64,000 nucleotides of DNA from Macrostomum lignano (taxonomy: Eukaryota), in assembly GCA_002269645.1 (NCBI GenBank), contig NIVC01002340.1, positions 62,001 to 126,000 on the forward strand. Direction: 5' to 3'. Under the pieces are notes generated by a model. That model searched no databases. It was not told the DNA's origin and saw only the letters and a program-made list of their open reading frames with translations. Position numbers and translations under genes: made by a program. The number at the start of each line of letters is the position of its first letter. The first letter of the stretch is position 1. Positions 3,649 to 49,241 of this stretch are shown one piece after another.

Positions 3649-5470
3649 TTACATGTTCATAAACACCCTTCGCAGTCCCATCTTCTTGCACAAGTCGTTG
3701 CACTCGTGCTTCTGAAGGTATCTCCGGATGCCGGATTTGCCTAAGTTCCAAGGCAAAAAGCGAGTGACGTCTGAGCAGTGAATCTTCGCGCTTTTTATCA
3801 GGGCCTCGCTTGCTTCGTCCGACAACGTCTTGGAGCAGCGCGTGAATATCTACAAAAGTCAGGTGTTTTTCAGGCTATGCTTCGGAATATAAAGTAAAAG
3901 TACGCTTGTAGCTCGTACATATGCTATTGAATCTTAAAAATTGACGCGTGTTTGCGTGTTAACAGACCTCAAGACCTTCCACTAGCAAATAGCCGCCAGT
4001 GATAGCATGTGTCCAGTGCGCAAAACAGTCAAGAACGGGCAAGTTTGGATCTACTAGCTTGAATCGTTGAGAAGCGGAGAAACAGTGCTTTTCAGGGTTG
4101 CCTGAGGACGCTTGCTTAGAGGACGAGTTTCCAGTACCAGCGGCACCTCTGCAATCAGATTCAACTGGGTTAGCTGACGTCACTTCACCTGGATTCCAGT
4201 CGTCGTCAATTATTTCAAATTGATTGGCTCCCGCGAGCTTCTTCTCAAATCGAAATGGGCATAGCAGTGCTGGATCGAGTCCTGCACGTCGCGTCCTTGG
4301 AATGATGACGGCAGTCGTGAAGGGCTTGACGACTCGTACGATTTTATTCAACCTGTTGAACTCCTGAAATAAAAACGTCGCTACCTGAAGAATCTCGCAA
4401 GTATTGAGAAGAACGAAAGGCTGCTTGAACGTATTTTTTAAGTCGGATACAAGGAACTCTCGCACAGTTGCTTTGTGCCATGCCGCTTCTCCCTCTTTGA
4501 GTAGCGCAAAGTACTCCGCAACCAGTCCTTGTAGCGCGAAGGGACGGGCAGATTTCTTCACTTGCACGCTGAAGACGGTTCGGCTGAGTTCGGAACCGTC
4601 AACGATGCTCTGTATTGAAGCCGGCACGCCAATAGCATGGTACTGAAAGTCTTCTGCAGCCGCATCCTTCCAATCCGGAGCGCCCAAATCGGGGGTCGCA
4701 GTCGCTACGGTGAAATTTGGAATACCGCAGATTTCAACTTGGGCATTGCGGAACCGCCTGTACGCATCTTGAAGAATTTTTTCTACTAGGGCGTCACTGC
4801 TCCTCAATTCAATGGCTTCCATGCCGACGAAGTGTTTCTTGAGTACAGTTAAAACTTTTTCATCCCTACTGATAGGGACCCAGTAGTAACTCAGATTCTT
4901 CTGACGGAAGCTGTCACCAACTATTGACGCACTGTCCTCAATTGCTTTTGATGCTGGATTGAAATTCTGTGACTTGTCCGTGAAGTGAACGACAGCTTTC
5001 AAGCTAGAAATCGCTTCGTGCATCTCTTGACAAACCCATTCGGAAAAGTTCATCCCCTCGAACTCGTCCACTAAAGAAACCGATGAACATCCACGCATAA
5101 GAGTACTTCTTGGACTGTCTACTAGGTCCAGAATGTCTTGAATGTCAGATGTACAGGTGATCACTTGATAGCCCTGTTTCCTATAAAATACAGCCGCCAC
5201 TAACACGGCAGTAGAAATTTTTTGCTCAGAGTGTTTGGTTTTCCGCGACAATGCAAGGATAGCTTTTCGAATTGAGTTGCGATGCCTGAAATCAGTCAGA
5301 ACTTTCGCCTTTCGCTCTTCTTCTTTTAAAAGCTGCTGAACTTTCTGATTTCGCAGTTGAATTGCAATTTGGAAGCGGCGGACGAGCTACTCCTCATTCT
5401 CGGTGGGCCTTCCGTATCCCAGCTCGCTCTGCTCGAAGATCCACCGAATTCGTTCATTAATGGACAACAT
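3649..5470 (-). CDS. Alpha-kinase-family pseudokinase with degenerate vWA-like region; 2 exons (5470-3968, 3849-3649); in-frame TAG at codon 28
   Basis: FAHWTHAITGGYLLVEGLE matches the alpha-kinase FSHWT...VDLQG motif. A phase-0 GT-AG intron (3967-3850) joins it to IFTRC...IHCSDVTRFLPWNLGKSGIRRYLQKHECNDLC (HxCNxxC Zn finger). The frame is open from 5386; ATG at 5470 lies upstream of TAG 5389-5387. Catalytic K, D and D are replaced. Confidence 0.85.
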
Positions 5471-5729
5471 AGCATACGATGAAGTCTGCAATGAGGATGA
5501 ATGCTGAAGTAATGAGTTGATATTACGAGCATAATTGCTTGGTTATCAGCAAAGAGGAGGCTATTTTTAATGTACTATATAAACCATGAGTAAAGTGGAG
5601 TCAATGAAATTGAGGGAAATTATTTTTAAAATCTATACTCAAAAGGTTTCAGTTAAAAAATCCAGTTCCTTCCCTCACCCAAGACCCTTACCCATTTAGC
5701 TATGCGTGTCTCTTTGATTTATGTCTTAC

Positions 5730-5990
5730 GAGCTAAAGCACATCTTCTGCCTCCCAGGTGCTGGGATGAAGTCAAAGTAACTTCAACTGTGAATGCCCTG
5801 CCTTTATTCAGGACAGGCTCACCTACCTCGGCCCCAACCCGGACGTTTCCAACAACGTTTTCAGGCTTGATAATTTCTACCTAAGGGCTAACGGGCGAGC
5901 GTGGAGGTGGACCGCACTGCGGACGCCGGCACCCACCGGATCTCCTTGTACGACGCTGCGGCCAGGGGTCGCGAGTGGTTAGCAGAATGT
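5730..5990 (+). mobile_element. Probable LINE 3'-end remnant between the kinase genes
   Basis: Frame from 5788 reads CECPAFIQDRLTYLG, resembling the H...ECP...R..YLG tail of RNase H-type LINE ORF2. Short and frameshifted. Confidence 0.4.
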
Positions 5991-7499
5991 TCGTCAACGC
6001 CTCCCCGCTGTACCCTGAGCCCCTTGCAGCTAAGTCAAAGTATAGTACATCTTGTTATGCTGGACATGGCCACCGTGTCTTTATGCATTGGTGTTAATCA
6101 AAACTAAAAGAGAAAGTTAGCAGGGACGCATCCATAGAGACCTGGGAATGAATGTCCGACCGGAAATGCTATATTTATTAGGCCTATAGACTTCTCTGTC
6201 CGAAGCATGCATGCAATTATCAATATAGTGCGTGTGGTTTAGGAAATTTTGTCTATGGTCGAACTTTATCAAGGTACTAGCAATCTGCGTCGCCCGTTTG
6301 AGAAGAAACAAAAATTAAATAAGCTACATGTAGCTCGTAGGATATGACCTTGTACAATCACTATTGTTAGTTTCTTAAGAAAAATGATCTTTAAACCAAA
6401 AAAGCATCAGCCCTGAAAGTGAAAGCCAGCTATCTAGCCTAAGATATCAGCATCCCCTATGAGCTTTGGCTCAAAGCATCTGACGCAACTCATGAGCCAC
6501 AGCATTTCAGCAATAGCCTCCATGAGCCTTGACATCTCAGCAACTTCCCATCAGCTTGTCCCGATTCCAGTATTTAGTTGGCCCCTAACTGGATCCCGAT
6601 CCAGAATCGTCTGAATGCGCCCATGAAACTTATAGCTATACAGCATGCAGCTACATATGCACTTTTATATGATTTATAGCTGTACAGTTTATGAATTGAA
6701 CTCGTCAATATTACAGTCACATACTGACATACCTGGTTTTATCCCGAGTCTTGATGGTCCCAAACAAATAAATTTATGTAGCCCAAACACCGTCAATAAC
6801 AGTTTTGGAAAACTAGTCGCGAAAGTACTCGATTAGTACTGGTTCGTCTTTCCTGGAAAACGTCTTGAATCTTTTGGCGTAGTTAAAATTTGGTTTCGTG
6901 TGCAATGCTGTGCAATTCAAAGATACTGGACTTTCCAGTTCGCTTCTCCCGCATTTTATAAAAATTATTTGCCTTCTATGTGCGATTGGTCATTTCCTAT
7001 GAATGGACGAAACGCACACAAGTCCCACAATGGCGTACAACAGCTCGTACAGCAGCTTTTTCCAAGAAAGTCTAGCAATTGATTCATCTATTTCCAAGAA
7101 ATTCTAGCAATTGACTCATCTATTTCCTAGAAATTCTTTGCAAAGTTCTGCGTTGCTAAATTCCTGTCTCTGTATCCTAATGGACGGCTTCAGAGTCTCA
7201 TTACCTTGATTGTACAATTGCTAAGGGGACGAAAGTGCGGTCCCTCTCTTTCGCTCTTCATCTCATAAAGTCAAATCCTACTCTTCCTAGAACAAAACGT
7301 ACAGTCAGAAAGTACAGTTAAAGCAAAAAGTCAAAGCGTACAGTCAAATAATTTTAATCCAAATCTTAGCATGGCCTGTCCGTTATTACGAGCGTATATC
7401 CTTTAAATTTCATATCGCATTAGTTTTAACTCACAAAGCAGACAAAGGACACGACTTTTTGCCCCAAGCTTTTGGAAACTAATTCCAAAAAGTAAAAAT

Positions 7500-9247
7500 A
7501 TGGACCTAAGTCGGCTAAACAAGAGACTGCGCAACATTTGCGAGAACGGAGGGGTGGAGTTTGGTCTTGACCCCACAGATGAAGAAGAGCAAGTCAGACG
7601 CTTCAAGCTGGCGCTGGCCATCACGCAGGACAATATTAAAAAGACCATGAGCCAAATAAAGCAATCGAGGAGTGTCGACATGTGCTTTCTACTCGACGCC
7701 ACTGGCAGTATGGCTGGGCACATTGCTGGAACAAAGGACAGCATAAAGAAGATAGTGAACACTCTAGTTCGCAGCCAGCAAAATCAGGCGACTGTTGAGA
7801 AGATCCGGTTTGCCGTTGTAGCCTACCGAGACTTGACCGATTCTGTTCCGCTTGAAGTATTCGACTTCAGCGAAAACAGCCAACAGTGCGTCAGCTTTCT
7901 GGAAAAAATTGCTGCTACAGGCGGAGGTGACGCACCGGAAGACGTGTTCGGGGGGTTGGAGGCCACCACGAAACTCAACTGGTCAGAAACCGCAGGCACG
8001 CGGATCATTTTTCACATCTGCGACGCTCCGTGCCACGGAAATGAATATCATACAAGCGAGCTCGGTGACAGCCACCCGAACGGGGACCCAAAGGGTCGCA
8101 CGGAGCATTATCTGTTCGATAAAATAAAAAAACTGAAAATCGACTATTACTTTGGAGAGATCAACAAGTCAACAGCGCAAATGCTGATCAAGTTTGCCAT
8201 CGCCTACGGTAGAACAATTGAGCACTTTGAAGTGGCAGGAATTGAGCAGATAGCTGGATCGGTTATTCAATCGATCGCCACTTCAGTCGAACGAAACGTA
8301 GAAAATTCCAAGTTGGTCGCTTGCCCCAAAAATCTGCCTGAAGTTGCGTTGAAACCGGAGATTCCAGACTGGTCAAAAAGGCCTGTGAATGTAGGCCACT
8401 TTTTGGAGTTTGTTGTTCCATCTTCAATTGCTTGTATCATTGACGACAAAGCTATTAAACAGGAGCACGGCAGCTCCGTAAAAGTCAGGATATCCGAAAG
8501 TCCTTTTGCCCAGGGTGCAGAAAGGCTTGCGTTTTATGCACTGTTGGCAGATTTAGAGGAGCACACTTCTGGCGATAGTCCATCTTCCGACCAGCTAATG
8601 GTACTAAAAGAGCCAAAAAGTATGAATAAGCACGATAAAATCCTGGACAGATGCAATTCGTCATGCGAGGTGCAAACAATCGCAGCCTTTCTTGCAACCG
8701 AGTTCAGTAAGTCAACGCCCAGCGGTATCGAGATCAAGTTCATTACAACAAAGACGCTTGTTCTCAGCCAACCATCCAGCAGAACAATGACGTGCGAAGA
8801 GTTCATGGGGAAGGACGCTCTGTTTGTGAAGTTTACAAACAACCTCAACTACACTGTGGAGAGGCGCGCTGACGAGATGAAAAAGTATGGAATTGAGCCC
8901 GAGGCATTGGATTACATCACGGCATTCTCGCACTGGACTTGGAACGCAACTAAAGGCTTTCTGATCGTTGTGGACCTTCAGGTTGTTCTCTTTTTATACC
9001 ATGCACTGATCTGTTCATAACACTTTTCAGCATTTTCTATATAGCAAAACCATCACATATCCTACTTCAGGGCTGCATCCGAAAGTCGTCCGGAAACTCG
9101 AAGCCGCAGATCTGGATGACTGACCCGGCAATCCACTGCAAGGACGTCACACGGTACCATCCAACGAACCTTGGTGCGGACGGCATCAAAGAGTTCTTTG
9201 GCACGCACCAGTGCAACCGTTTTTGCAAGGATCTGAACAAGCCATAA
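7500..9247 (+). CDS. vWA-domain alpha-kinase (VwkA-like architecture), 2 exons (7500-8981, 9071-9247), 552 aa
   Basis: vWA MIDAS-like DMCFLLDATGSM and GGGDAPEDV. Kinase motifs PFAQGAERLAF, VLK, CEVQ, KFTNN, AFSHWT, VVDLQ|G, TDPAIH, NLG, HQCNRFC. Intron GT 8982 to ttcag 9070, phase 0; stop TAA 9245-9247. Confidence 0.93.
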
Positions 9248-10679
9248 CTGATTGTGATCACTTTATGAATATACTTTTGCGAATTGGGATTAATAGTACA
9301 TAGCACCGAAAAACCTAATGCCTAAGTTTGTGACAGCAATAATTAGACCATAGTTAGTGTTCTCTATACGCTCGTGCTATTTACAATTAACTTGTACTGA
9401 GTTTGAAATTCTCTCCTTGGACACCACATTTCTAAGTTTTGCCCTACTAAATTTACTGGAATAGACCTCAATCGCTAGACTTTCTGCCTTATGAAAGCAT
9501 TGTGCTAATTAATTACATCCAATATTGATTTGGCCAATGAGCCGACCCAAAATGCTATATTCTTCTAACTCGTATCCATGGCATCAATCGGATCCTAATG
9601 TCTTACCTAGCTTACTCTCAAATCCCTTTGAAATTATGAAAAGTTTTTTTCCAGTTTTTGATGGCTTGCGCTTTTAATAAGTCTGGAAGTTTCTTTATTT
9701 GTTCAAAAGCCAAAGCGAAACGTACTTCCTCGAGCATCACTACTGCAAGTAGTTAATGTTATCAAAAAGTTTTTTCTATTCTTATTCAACTCTTACGGAT
9801 GGGTCGTTTTTTGTTTTAAGCCGACATGATTTGATTGATGTTCCCCCAAATTCGGCGTATTTATCCAGGAGAATTCTTGCTAGCTGTTGACAACTTGCTA
9901 CATAGCGGTTAAGAAATATATGAAACAACACAAAATTTTTGACACTCTGATTTTTTTGGACGCCCGGAACCGAACGCGATATATTGGATGGATAGAAAAA
10001 ATGAATAGAAGCATTTTTTATCTATGAAAATTAATAGTAGACACAATTTGAGCTAGATCCACGACCTATGCTAAATATTTATTCGAAATTAATAGATCCG
10101 AAGCTCTATTACGAGTATTTTTCATGCGAGACAGCTGCTAAGAGTACATTTACATACATGTGATGTAAATTACATTAAATTACATTAAATTAAAGTAAAT
10201 TACATTTACATTACATACATAATTTGCAAGGCGTTTTCACCAATTTGCCAGCCTGGAGTGTGACTGGTATTTGACTGCAACAGTATTCGATTTAATAAAC
10301 ATTAAATTTTGTCAATTACATTCCTGTGCTGATAATTTTATGATTAGCTAATAGCTTTAGATAGATGTACATGAAATTTACATGCTTTCAAAAGCATTAA
10401 AAAAATAATTTCTTTAGTTTGAATACAGCTTGTAATGGTAAGAGCAGATTTATCAACTATTAGACTCCAATCAATCTATCTAACAAACCGTAAAAATAGC
10501 ACGAAATAAATTCAACCTTACTTGCTTCAAAATTACCGTTTGATGGTGGAACAATAACTTTTACAGAAACCTATAAGCCAGCTTTGAAGTGATTCTTTAG
10601 TACTCGTAAATACCATGAGTCGGCAAAGTCCGTCCCACGGGCCACAGGCGGCCCGCGAAGCCTCTCTATCCTCGGGTCG

Positions 10680-16629: not shown

Positions 16630-49241
<32,612 letters not shown>

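Follow-up and report, generated by a model that had tools for sequence, protein, structure and literature searches.

The vWKa group of alpha-kinases, whose members carry a von Willebrand factor A (vWA) domain, is broadly present among invertebrates (PMC2827801). In Dictyostelium, VwkA influences myosin II levels and is located at the contractile vacuole, and the role of the zinc finger in alpha-kinases has been described in the same work (PMC2827801). Another alpha-kinase, ALPK3, has been modelled as catalytically inactive (PMC11358020, citing Agarwal et al. 2022), although its status as a pseudokinase is contested and PMC11358020 reports activity. The flatworm Macrostomum lignano allows RNA interference and transgenesis. 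In the literature, no paper was found that deals with Macrostomum together with vwkA or alpha-kinases of this kind.

Here we analyzed a stretch of 64,000 nucleotides of M. lignano DNA (the window; GenBank assembly GCA_002269645.1, contig NIVC01002340.1, positions 62,001 to 126,000 of the forward strand), in which two paralogous genes of this family diverge head-to-head. Gene A begins with an ATG at 7500 on the + strand and gene B with an ATG at 5470 on the - strand, the two start codons being separated by a spacer of 2029 bp (5471..7499, assigned to neither strand). The pair probably arose by a lineage-specific inverted duplication, in which a VwkA-type gene gave rise to A, which is intact, and B, a dead copy that is weakly constrained and eroding. 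No further copies of either gene were detected within the window by tblastn. The same head-to-head pair is present at a second M. lignano locus, L001 (Mlig_3_7 contig NIVC01001533.1), where A' (PAA66754.1, 556 amino acids) and B' (PAA66753.1) are 1369 bp apart, and a remnant of a third B-type gene, B'', lies at locus L004 (NIVC01000192.1). Public databases already list the proteins as uncharacterized entries, and the family is lineage-restricted. An intact kinase beside a dead but still-folded paralogue offers a small, testable case of pseudokinase origin and decay in a recently polyploid genome.

Gene A and its divergent neighbour

Gene A (7500..9247, + strand; TAA at 9245..9247) encodes 552 amino acids and is interrupted by a single intron. 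Exon 1 (7500..8981, +; codons 1-494), an open reading frame (ORF) that runs up to a donor GT at 8982, contains the N-terminal helix, the vWA domain and most of the alpha-kinase domain. The intron (8982..9070, +) comprises 89 nt, and exon 2 (9071..9247, +; codons 495-552 and the TAA) adds the G of DLQG, D512 of TDP, the NLGADG loop and H540/C542/C546. The vWA domain (7680..8039, +) was identified by Pfam VWA_4 at residues 61-180 with 43.1 bits (cut-off, 27), and its DATGS (D66-S70), which resembles a metal-ion-dependent adhesion site (MIDAS), occupies the conserved DxTGSM column of the family in an alignment of 19 sequences. The alpha-kinase domain (8508..9226, +; residues 337-546, split by the intron) matches Pfam Alpha_kinase (PF02816) over profile positions 1-185 of 185, with 138.8 bits (cut-off, 21.3). 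The catalytic residues are in place, namely K370, D492 and Q494 (DLQG) and D512 (TDP), and the zinc module of the form His ... His-x-Cys-x3-Cys is complete (H478, H540, C542 and C546), next to the Gly-rich loop NLGADG. In an alignment of A with two solved alpha-kinase structures, 4KUJ of Entamoeba and 1IA9 of TRPM7, the K, D, Q and D as well as the zinc ligands all matched.

More than 280 VwkA-like relatives share the architecture of A, among them proteins of nematodes, rotifers, octocorals, mosses and Dictyostelium, and some of the octocoral ones are named "alpha-protein kinase vwkA-like". Judged by its sequence, gene A is thus an intact new member of the known VwkA-type family, combining a vWA with an alpha-kinase domain. 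The closest matches in the search for relatives were 40-46% identical to A, and the exact protein of the window was absent from the protein collection searched. The 94% identical paralogue A' was also absent from this homology search, its 90% cluster being represented by an unrelated-looking metagenome fragment of 35 amino acids. The lack of a close match for A is therefore a database artefact, caused by this choice of cluster representative.

Gene B (5470..3649, - strand; TAA at 3651..3649) has 567 codons and likewise a single intron. Exon 1 (3968..5470, -; codons 1-501) contains the N-terminal helix, a degenerate vWA-like region, a kinase-like N-lobe, a disordered insert and the start of the C-lobe, and it ends in LLVEGLE. 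Exon 2 (3649..3849, -; codons 502-567 and the TAA) carries KSAK in place of TDP, together with IHC, NLGKSG and H549/C551/C555. The intron between them (3850..3967, -) comprises 118 nt. Each gene thus has one GT..AG intron in phase 0, at a homologous position after VVDLQ in A and after VEGLE in B, and both introns were found again at L001. The two start codons and the common intron position had been proposed in a first-pass annotation of this DNA, made from the letters alone, and both were confirmed; the A and B motif pairs that it quoted as corresponding to each other also line up in the 19-sequence alignment.

The two proteins are homologous from end to end, at a level beyond chance, and have diverged strongly. 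By BLASTP, A and B are 34% identical over the C-terminal 89 amino acids (E 4e-16) and only ∼20% identical over the other 420 (E 2e-11). B matches Pfam Alpha_kinase in part (profile positions 118-185, residues 476-555; 40.2 bits against the same cut-off of 21.3), and this match is confined to the C-terminal third of that domain. No Pfam VWA match was obtained for gene B, and its degenerate vWA-like region (4826..5299, -; approximately residues 58-215) was delimited by alignment. Apart from a nematode protein of 894 amino acids (P0001; 92.8 bits), the best scores of B were those against A' (86.8 bits) and A (83.3 bits), all others being at or below 76. Together with the common intron position, these scores point to a local origin of B.

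That one paralogue is catalytically complete and the other is not, as the first-pass annotation had stated, was borne out: A has all alpha-kinase hallmarks, and those of catalysis are missing from B. A deletion has removed the MIDAS segment from B, and in B' its residues are N/H/L. In the vWA remnant of B, GGGDxPEDVFGG has turned into MRGCSSVSLVDEFEGM, and the FHIxDAPCHG block is gone. The ATP-binding lysine is Arg337 (TVREF for VLKEY); in EGLE, which replaces DLQG, Gly499 stands for the catalytic Asp and Glu501 for the Gln; and in KSA, which replaces TDP, the Asp is Ser521. This last position aligns with D766 of MHCK-A, and the PDB entries of MHCK-A D756A and D766A carry the label inactive. 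Judged by these residues, B is unable to phosphorylate by the canonical alpha-kinase mechanism. At the TDP Asp, all three B-types (B, B' and B'') have Ser; at the former catalytic Asp, B has Gly, B' has Asn and B'' still has Asp. By this pattern, activity was lost before the B-types split, and the site drifted afterwards.

B nevertheless keeps much of what is structural in an alpha-kinase, including PDW, PF, FxHWT, IHC, the Gly-rich loop NLGKSG and the zinc ligands H485/H549/C551/C555. PDW, this loop, the zinc ligands and further structural positions do not vary among the three B-types. In an AlphaFold2 model of the kinase-like part of B, the core has a predicted local distance difference test (pLDDT) score above 90, and the top 43 Foldseek matches in the PDB are all alpha-kinases (E 3e-10 to 5e-6). 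In the model of exon 1, the vWA-like region reaches a pLDDT of 45-80 and matches vWA folds (integrin beta-I, ANTXR2, vWF A1 and NorD), so that a vWA-like fold of the remnant is suggested by a model of low to moderate confidence.

The TAG at codon 28 of gene B

The frame of B is interrupted by a premature in-frame TAG at codon 28 (5387..5389, -). The first-pass annotation, which was right in placing the gene pair, had missed this codon, and the minus-strand frame is therefore not open. The TAG lies in the conserved N-terminal helix, where it faces Gln31 of A and where all other B-types have Glu; around it, B reads PTENEE, the stop and then LVRRFQIAI, and A reads PTDEEEQVRRFKLALAI. The codon is GAG at L001, and one G-to-T change separates this GAG from the TAG of the window.

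The same change affects splicing signals. The T of the TAG doubles as the second base of a GT donor, giving GA/GTAGCT (the slash marks the splice junction) in place of the ancestral GA/GGAGCT. From this donor a cryptic in-frame intron of 522 nt can be drawn (4869..5390, -), with the boundaries GA/GTAGCT ... CCTATCAG/T and the acceptor AG at 4870..4869, which removes codons 28-201 and with them the vWA remnant. The public M. lignano protein P0123 (UniRef A0A1I8I2A9) consists of five residues of a 5' extension followed by 393 residues that correspond exactly to B minus this intron. Such an isoform would still contain the pseudokinase domain, preceded by the N-terminal helix. A single base change would thus have two opposite outcomes for the protein, the mutation to a stop codon bringing a new splice donor with it.

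A second public M. lignano protein, P0121 (UniRef A0A1I8JD27), differs from B over the 472 residues up to its splice junction only at codon 28, where it has Glu. After the junction 67 residues are identical to B, so that 538 aligned residues match besides codon 28. The junction, deduced from this protein, defines an alternative, longer B intron (3850..4054, -) with its donor at 4054 (QRFKL/GTAGAT), by which 29 further codons are lost, among them that of the zinc ligand His485 and those of the former catalytic loop.

Codon reassignment or readthrough of the TAG was considered and rejected: Glu is present both in the paralogue and in the near-identical gene model, a single G-to-T change is sufficient, and A, B, A' and B' all end with TAA.

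Paralogous loci, selection and origin of the pair

Several related loci are expected in this species, since M. lignano counts as a hidden polyploid whose whole genome was recently duplicated (PMC10468722), and non-repetitive blocks present in duplicate make up 180 Mb of its assembly (PMC5730564). RNA-seq transcript assemblies were the source of the GenBank annotation of Mlig_3_7 (PMC5730564); A', B' and the B'' fragment are part of it and are therefore probably transcribed. Comparing within-species paralogs of M. lignano only, we found that A and A' are 94% identical in their DNA, with approximate values of dN 0.029, dS 0.14-0.18 and dN/dS (omega) 0.17-0.23. For B and B' the identity is 88%, with dN 0.11, dS 0.17-0.22 and omega 0.50-0.70, likewise approximate (Nei-Gojobori [NG86] bootstrap interval, 0.39-0.68). 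The differences are distributed over the three codon positions as 73/51/82 in B versus 21/13/59 in A. Along B, the lowest omega values are those of parts of the kinase-like domain (down to 0.22), the zinc module (0.26) and the N-terminal helix (0.33), and the highest is that of the vWA remnant (0.86; codons 62-124). By this pattern, any function of B would more probably lie with the kinase-like domain and the helix than with the vWA remnant.

The reading frames of the B-types have also been retained to a degree not expected under neutrality. In a neutral simulation of the 206 substitutions between B and B', 7.4 in-frame stops were expected and 1 was observed (P = 0.0045), and all seven indels between B and B' are multiples of three. 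A dN/dS near 1 for the minus-strand gene, which the first-pass annotation had named, together with a lack of transcription, as a sign against its proposal, is not what was found, the bootstrap interval lying below 1; even so, B carries the TAG in the window and the B-type copy at L004 is broken. The disordered insert of the kinase-like domain of B' (L001 11440..12270) contains eleven tandem copies of an 87-nt (29-amino-acid) unit, SDRRGAAGFAHSAAGNPSYDRGSSDSYYE. One degenerate copy of this unit is present in B of the window, seven are present in the annotated PAA66753.1 and eleven in UniRef A0A1I8H2M5.

L004 is a homeolog of L001, with flanks that are ∼97% identical. There, A and the 5' half of B are gone, ∼6.3 kb having been replaced by ∼3.7 kb of unrelated sequence (L004 5752..10565), and the B'' remnant is frameshifted near 9722, yet annotated as a gene of 233 amino acids (P0128). 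Two more distant A-type paralogues, P0002 at locus L002 and P0003 at locus L003, are 44-46% identical to A. No B partner was found at L002 by annotation or tblastn, nor at L003 by annotation alone. At L002 (12604..13876), a partial vWA-alpha-kinase copy that corresponds to A residues 210-550 (38% identical) lies downstream of P0002 on the same strand and is missing from the gene list. The recurrence of an active/dead head-to-head pair, proposed in the first-pass annotation as a mark of a conserved module, was accordingly seen at L001 and not at L004, L002, L003 (by annotation) or the nematode and rotifer loci described below.

The similarity between the window and L001 is closely confined to the genes. 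Upstream, it ends 6 nt before the ATG of A and 30 nt before the ATG of B; downstream, it ends 2-3 nt past both stop codons. The A intron (89 nt) aligns over its full length with its counterpart at L001 (86 nt), with few mismatches and small gaps; the B introns (118 nt and 93 nt) align poorly. Along B, dS ranges from 0.09 to 0.45. These observations would fit an older duplication with later gene conversion limited to the coding sequence.

The spacers of the two pairs share no detectable homology. Comparing the 2029 bp of the window with the 1369 bp of L001 at word size 7 and with relaxed scoring, we obtained only matches of at most 55 nt, which is at chance level, and we rejected a conserved shared promoter for this reason. 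Bidirectional promoters usually have spacers under 1 kb. Neither a short nor a conserved spacer is found here, given the two lengths and the lack of homology. The ∼2-kb upstream region that the first-pass annotation described as shared by A and B does lie between them, but its sequence is not conserved; on these alignments, it is shared by position only. Within the spacer, a 32-bp unit occurs in 2.5-3 tandem copies (7053..7148), ∼350-450 bp ahead of the A start codon; the spacer also weakly resembles a minisatellite located at 13.5-14.2 kb. A GC-rich patch at 5860..6030, set in AT-richer surroundings, has no ORF, no RNA-family match and no counterpart at L001. Rfam gave zero matches across the whole window, and a hidden gene or RNA in the spacer was rejected, the 32-bp mini-repeat and short chance repeats being all that was detected there.

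The sequence of events that we favour can be drawn as follows. A VwkA-type gene with vWA and alpha-kinase domains would have undergone a lineage-specific inverted duplication in M. lignano. Copy A would have stayed a normal enzyme gene under purifying selection, its activity being predicted. Copy B would have diverged to ∼20% identity and lost the vWA metal site and the catalytic residues; still present in it are the N-terminal helix and the alpha-kinase fold, together with the zinc module and the Gly-rich loop for peptide binding. The B-types would have held an open frame, under weak constraint, through most of their history. They now appear to be eroding in the polyploid genome, with a nonsense codon here, truncation, frameshift and loss of A at L004, and a repeat expansion in the otherwise intact copy at L001. 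The G-to-T change at codon 28 would have produced both the stop and the GT donor, and splicing of the 522-nt intron in frame would give a 393-residue product of helix plus pseudokinase domain. The head-to-head layout may be a remnant of the duplication event, carried along when the pair was duplicated again, and it is best read in this way and not as evidence for a shared promoter. Any function of B would be non-catalytic binding, most plausibly via the N-terminal helix and the kinase-like domain.

The first-pass annotation had proposed instead that A and B may be a co-regulated kinase/pseudokinase module, possibly in defence signalling. In this reading the module would be maintained, B would bind A, for example via the N-terminal helix that both have or via a dimer of kinase domains, and would tune or localize its activity, possibly in stress or defence, and the divergent layout would supply a bidirectional promoter. 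What speaks positively for such a module is that the pair recurs at a single paralogous locus, so that the head-to-head arrangement is retained at two loci in all. It would also accommodate the non-neutral ORF retention of the B-types, the constraint on their putative partner-binding regions (the helix, the kinase-like parts and the zinc module have the lowest omega), the alpha-kinase fold, zinc ligands and Gly-rich loop kept in B, and the presence of A', B' and the B'' fragment in an RNA-seq-derived annotation. Against this stand the overall omega of B, the premature stop in the window, the loss of A and truncation of B at L004, and the non-homologous spacers, which at 2.0 and 1.4 kb exceed the usual limit for bidirectional promoters. 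Moreover, no B-type was found outside M. lignano in the sequences searched, and neither the other A-type paralogues nor the relatives checked in other phyla have a dead partner. The analysis yielded no link between the pair and defence, or any open question, and we regard the module as unlikely. A more specific form of this idea, in which the B-types are regulatory pseudokinases that pair with the neighbouring A via the N-terminal helix or a dimer of kinase domains and the G-to-T change is not a null allele but a switch to the shorter isoform without the vWA remnant, appears quite unlikely; if true, the divergent unit would be a Macrostomum-specific signalling module and the first alpha-kinase/pseudokinase gene pair described. 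It is very unlikely, on the other hand, that B is an ordinary, long-dead pseudogene whose open frame and public models are annotation artefacts and chance. Every catalytic and MIDAS residue is gone, a nonsense codon is present here and a frameshift and truncation at L004, omega in the vWA remnant is high, and the splice variants remove structural elements. Yet a 1.7-kb frame at ∼20% identity to the parent could not have been retained by chance, and the single stop against 7.4 expected, the in-frame indels (7/7), the bootstrap upper limit of 0.68 for omega, the invariant zinc ligands, Gly-rich loop and PDW, and a fold core predicted with high confidence all argue against it. Finally, the TAG could be an assembly or consensus error, or could be read through or recoded, leaving the window with a normal full-length gene B. 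The Glu of the otherwise identical P0121 implies that a full-length version exists in the species, and only a single base distinguishes GAG from TAG. However, P0123, which matches the window at 100%, needs the T for its GT donor (a G would give GG), and the TAA stops of A, B, A' and B' give no sign of codon reassignment. Errors in long-read consensus sequences, moreover, are mostly indels and not substitutions. We therefore consider an artefactual or recoded TAG highly improbable.

Our reading of B as an eroding, weakly constrained duplicate has points to answer as well. With omega clearly below 1, indels in frame and low omega in the helix, kinase-like parts and zinc module, the B-types are not simply junk and might still have a regulatory role, and the pair has been kept head-to-head at two loci. 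Both P0121 and P0123 could be gene predictions rather than transcripts, and the TAG itself is backed, at the level of sequence, by this assembly and one public gene model that needs the T. The AlphaFold2 alignments for B are dominated by A-type sequences, so that the models lean to the family fold. Furthermore, the mosaic of dS values, the conserved A intron and the unalignable flanks suggest gene conversion within the coding sequence, which renders dS, omega and dating approximate.

Elsewhere in the window, a Notch-like receptor gene is suggested on the + strand (21746..40226) by exon-sized EGF-repeat ORFs (21746..22444 and 31724..32782) and three LNR/Notch domains (38838..40226). Long minisatellite arrays fill its introns, for instance those at 22411..24632 (63 copies of a 35-nt unit), 32834..33889 and 33963..35922 (63 copies of a 31-nt unit).

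Comparison with known systems

B-types appear to be restricted to M. lignano among the sequences searched. A phmmer search with B exon 1 against 1.84 billion representative proteins returned M. lignano B-types only, and a word-indexed search with B yielded three M. lignano entries and nothing else. The A-type architecture is widely shared: A has the same N-terminal vWA and C-terminal alpha-kinase domains as VwkA of Dictyostelium discoideum, and vwkA-like proteins of dictyostelids and octocorals are 30-33% identical to A over more than 90% of its length. The dictyostelid proteins differ in lacking the N-terminal helix, that of A being of the flatworm/nematode type. What VwkA does in Dictyostelium, where it affects myosin II levels and is located at the contractile vacuole, need not apply to A.

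The first-pass annotation had also likened the pair to the divergently transcribed sensor/executor pairs of plant NLRs. This analogy is one of gene orientation: the common ground is a pair of divergent paralogues of which one is without canonical activity, and nothing more. The two systems have no domains in common, and the spacer of the window pair is unconserved.

A parallel for B itself is ALPK3, the proposed pseudokinase, which is likewise an alpha-kinase paralogue; B is without the canonical catalytic residues and keeps the zinc module. The two differ in age and constraint. ALPK3 is ancient, conserved and essential, whereas B-types were found in M. lignano only, have an omega of 0.5-0.7 and are broken at two of three loci.

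Local duplicates of vWA-alpha-kinase genes are known from this family as well. The rotifer Adineta vaga has three family members in a same-strand tandem, which together with the partial copy at L002 shows that the family also expands locally; in the nematode Pristionchus entomophagus, the family copy is solitary. The Adineta vaga and L002 arrays lie on one strand, with no dead member seen, whereas the pair in the window is head-to-head and one of its two members is dead.

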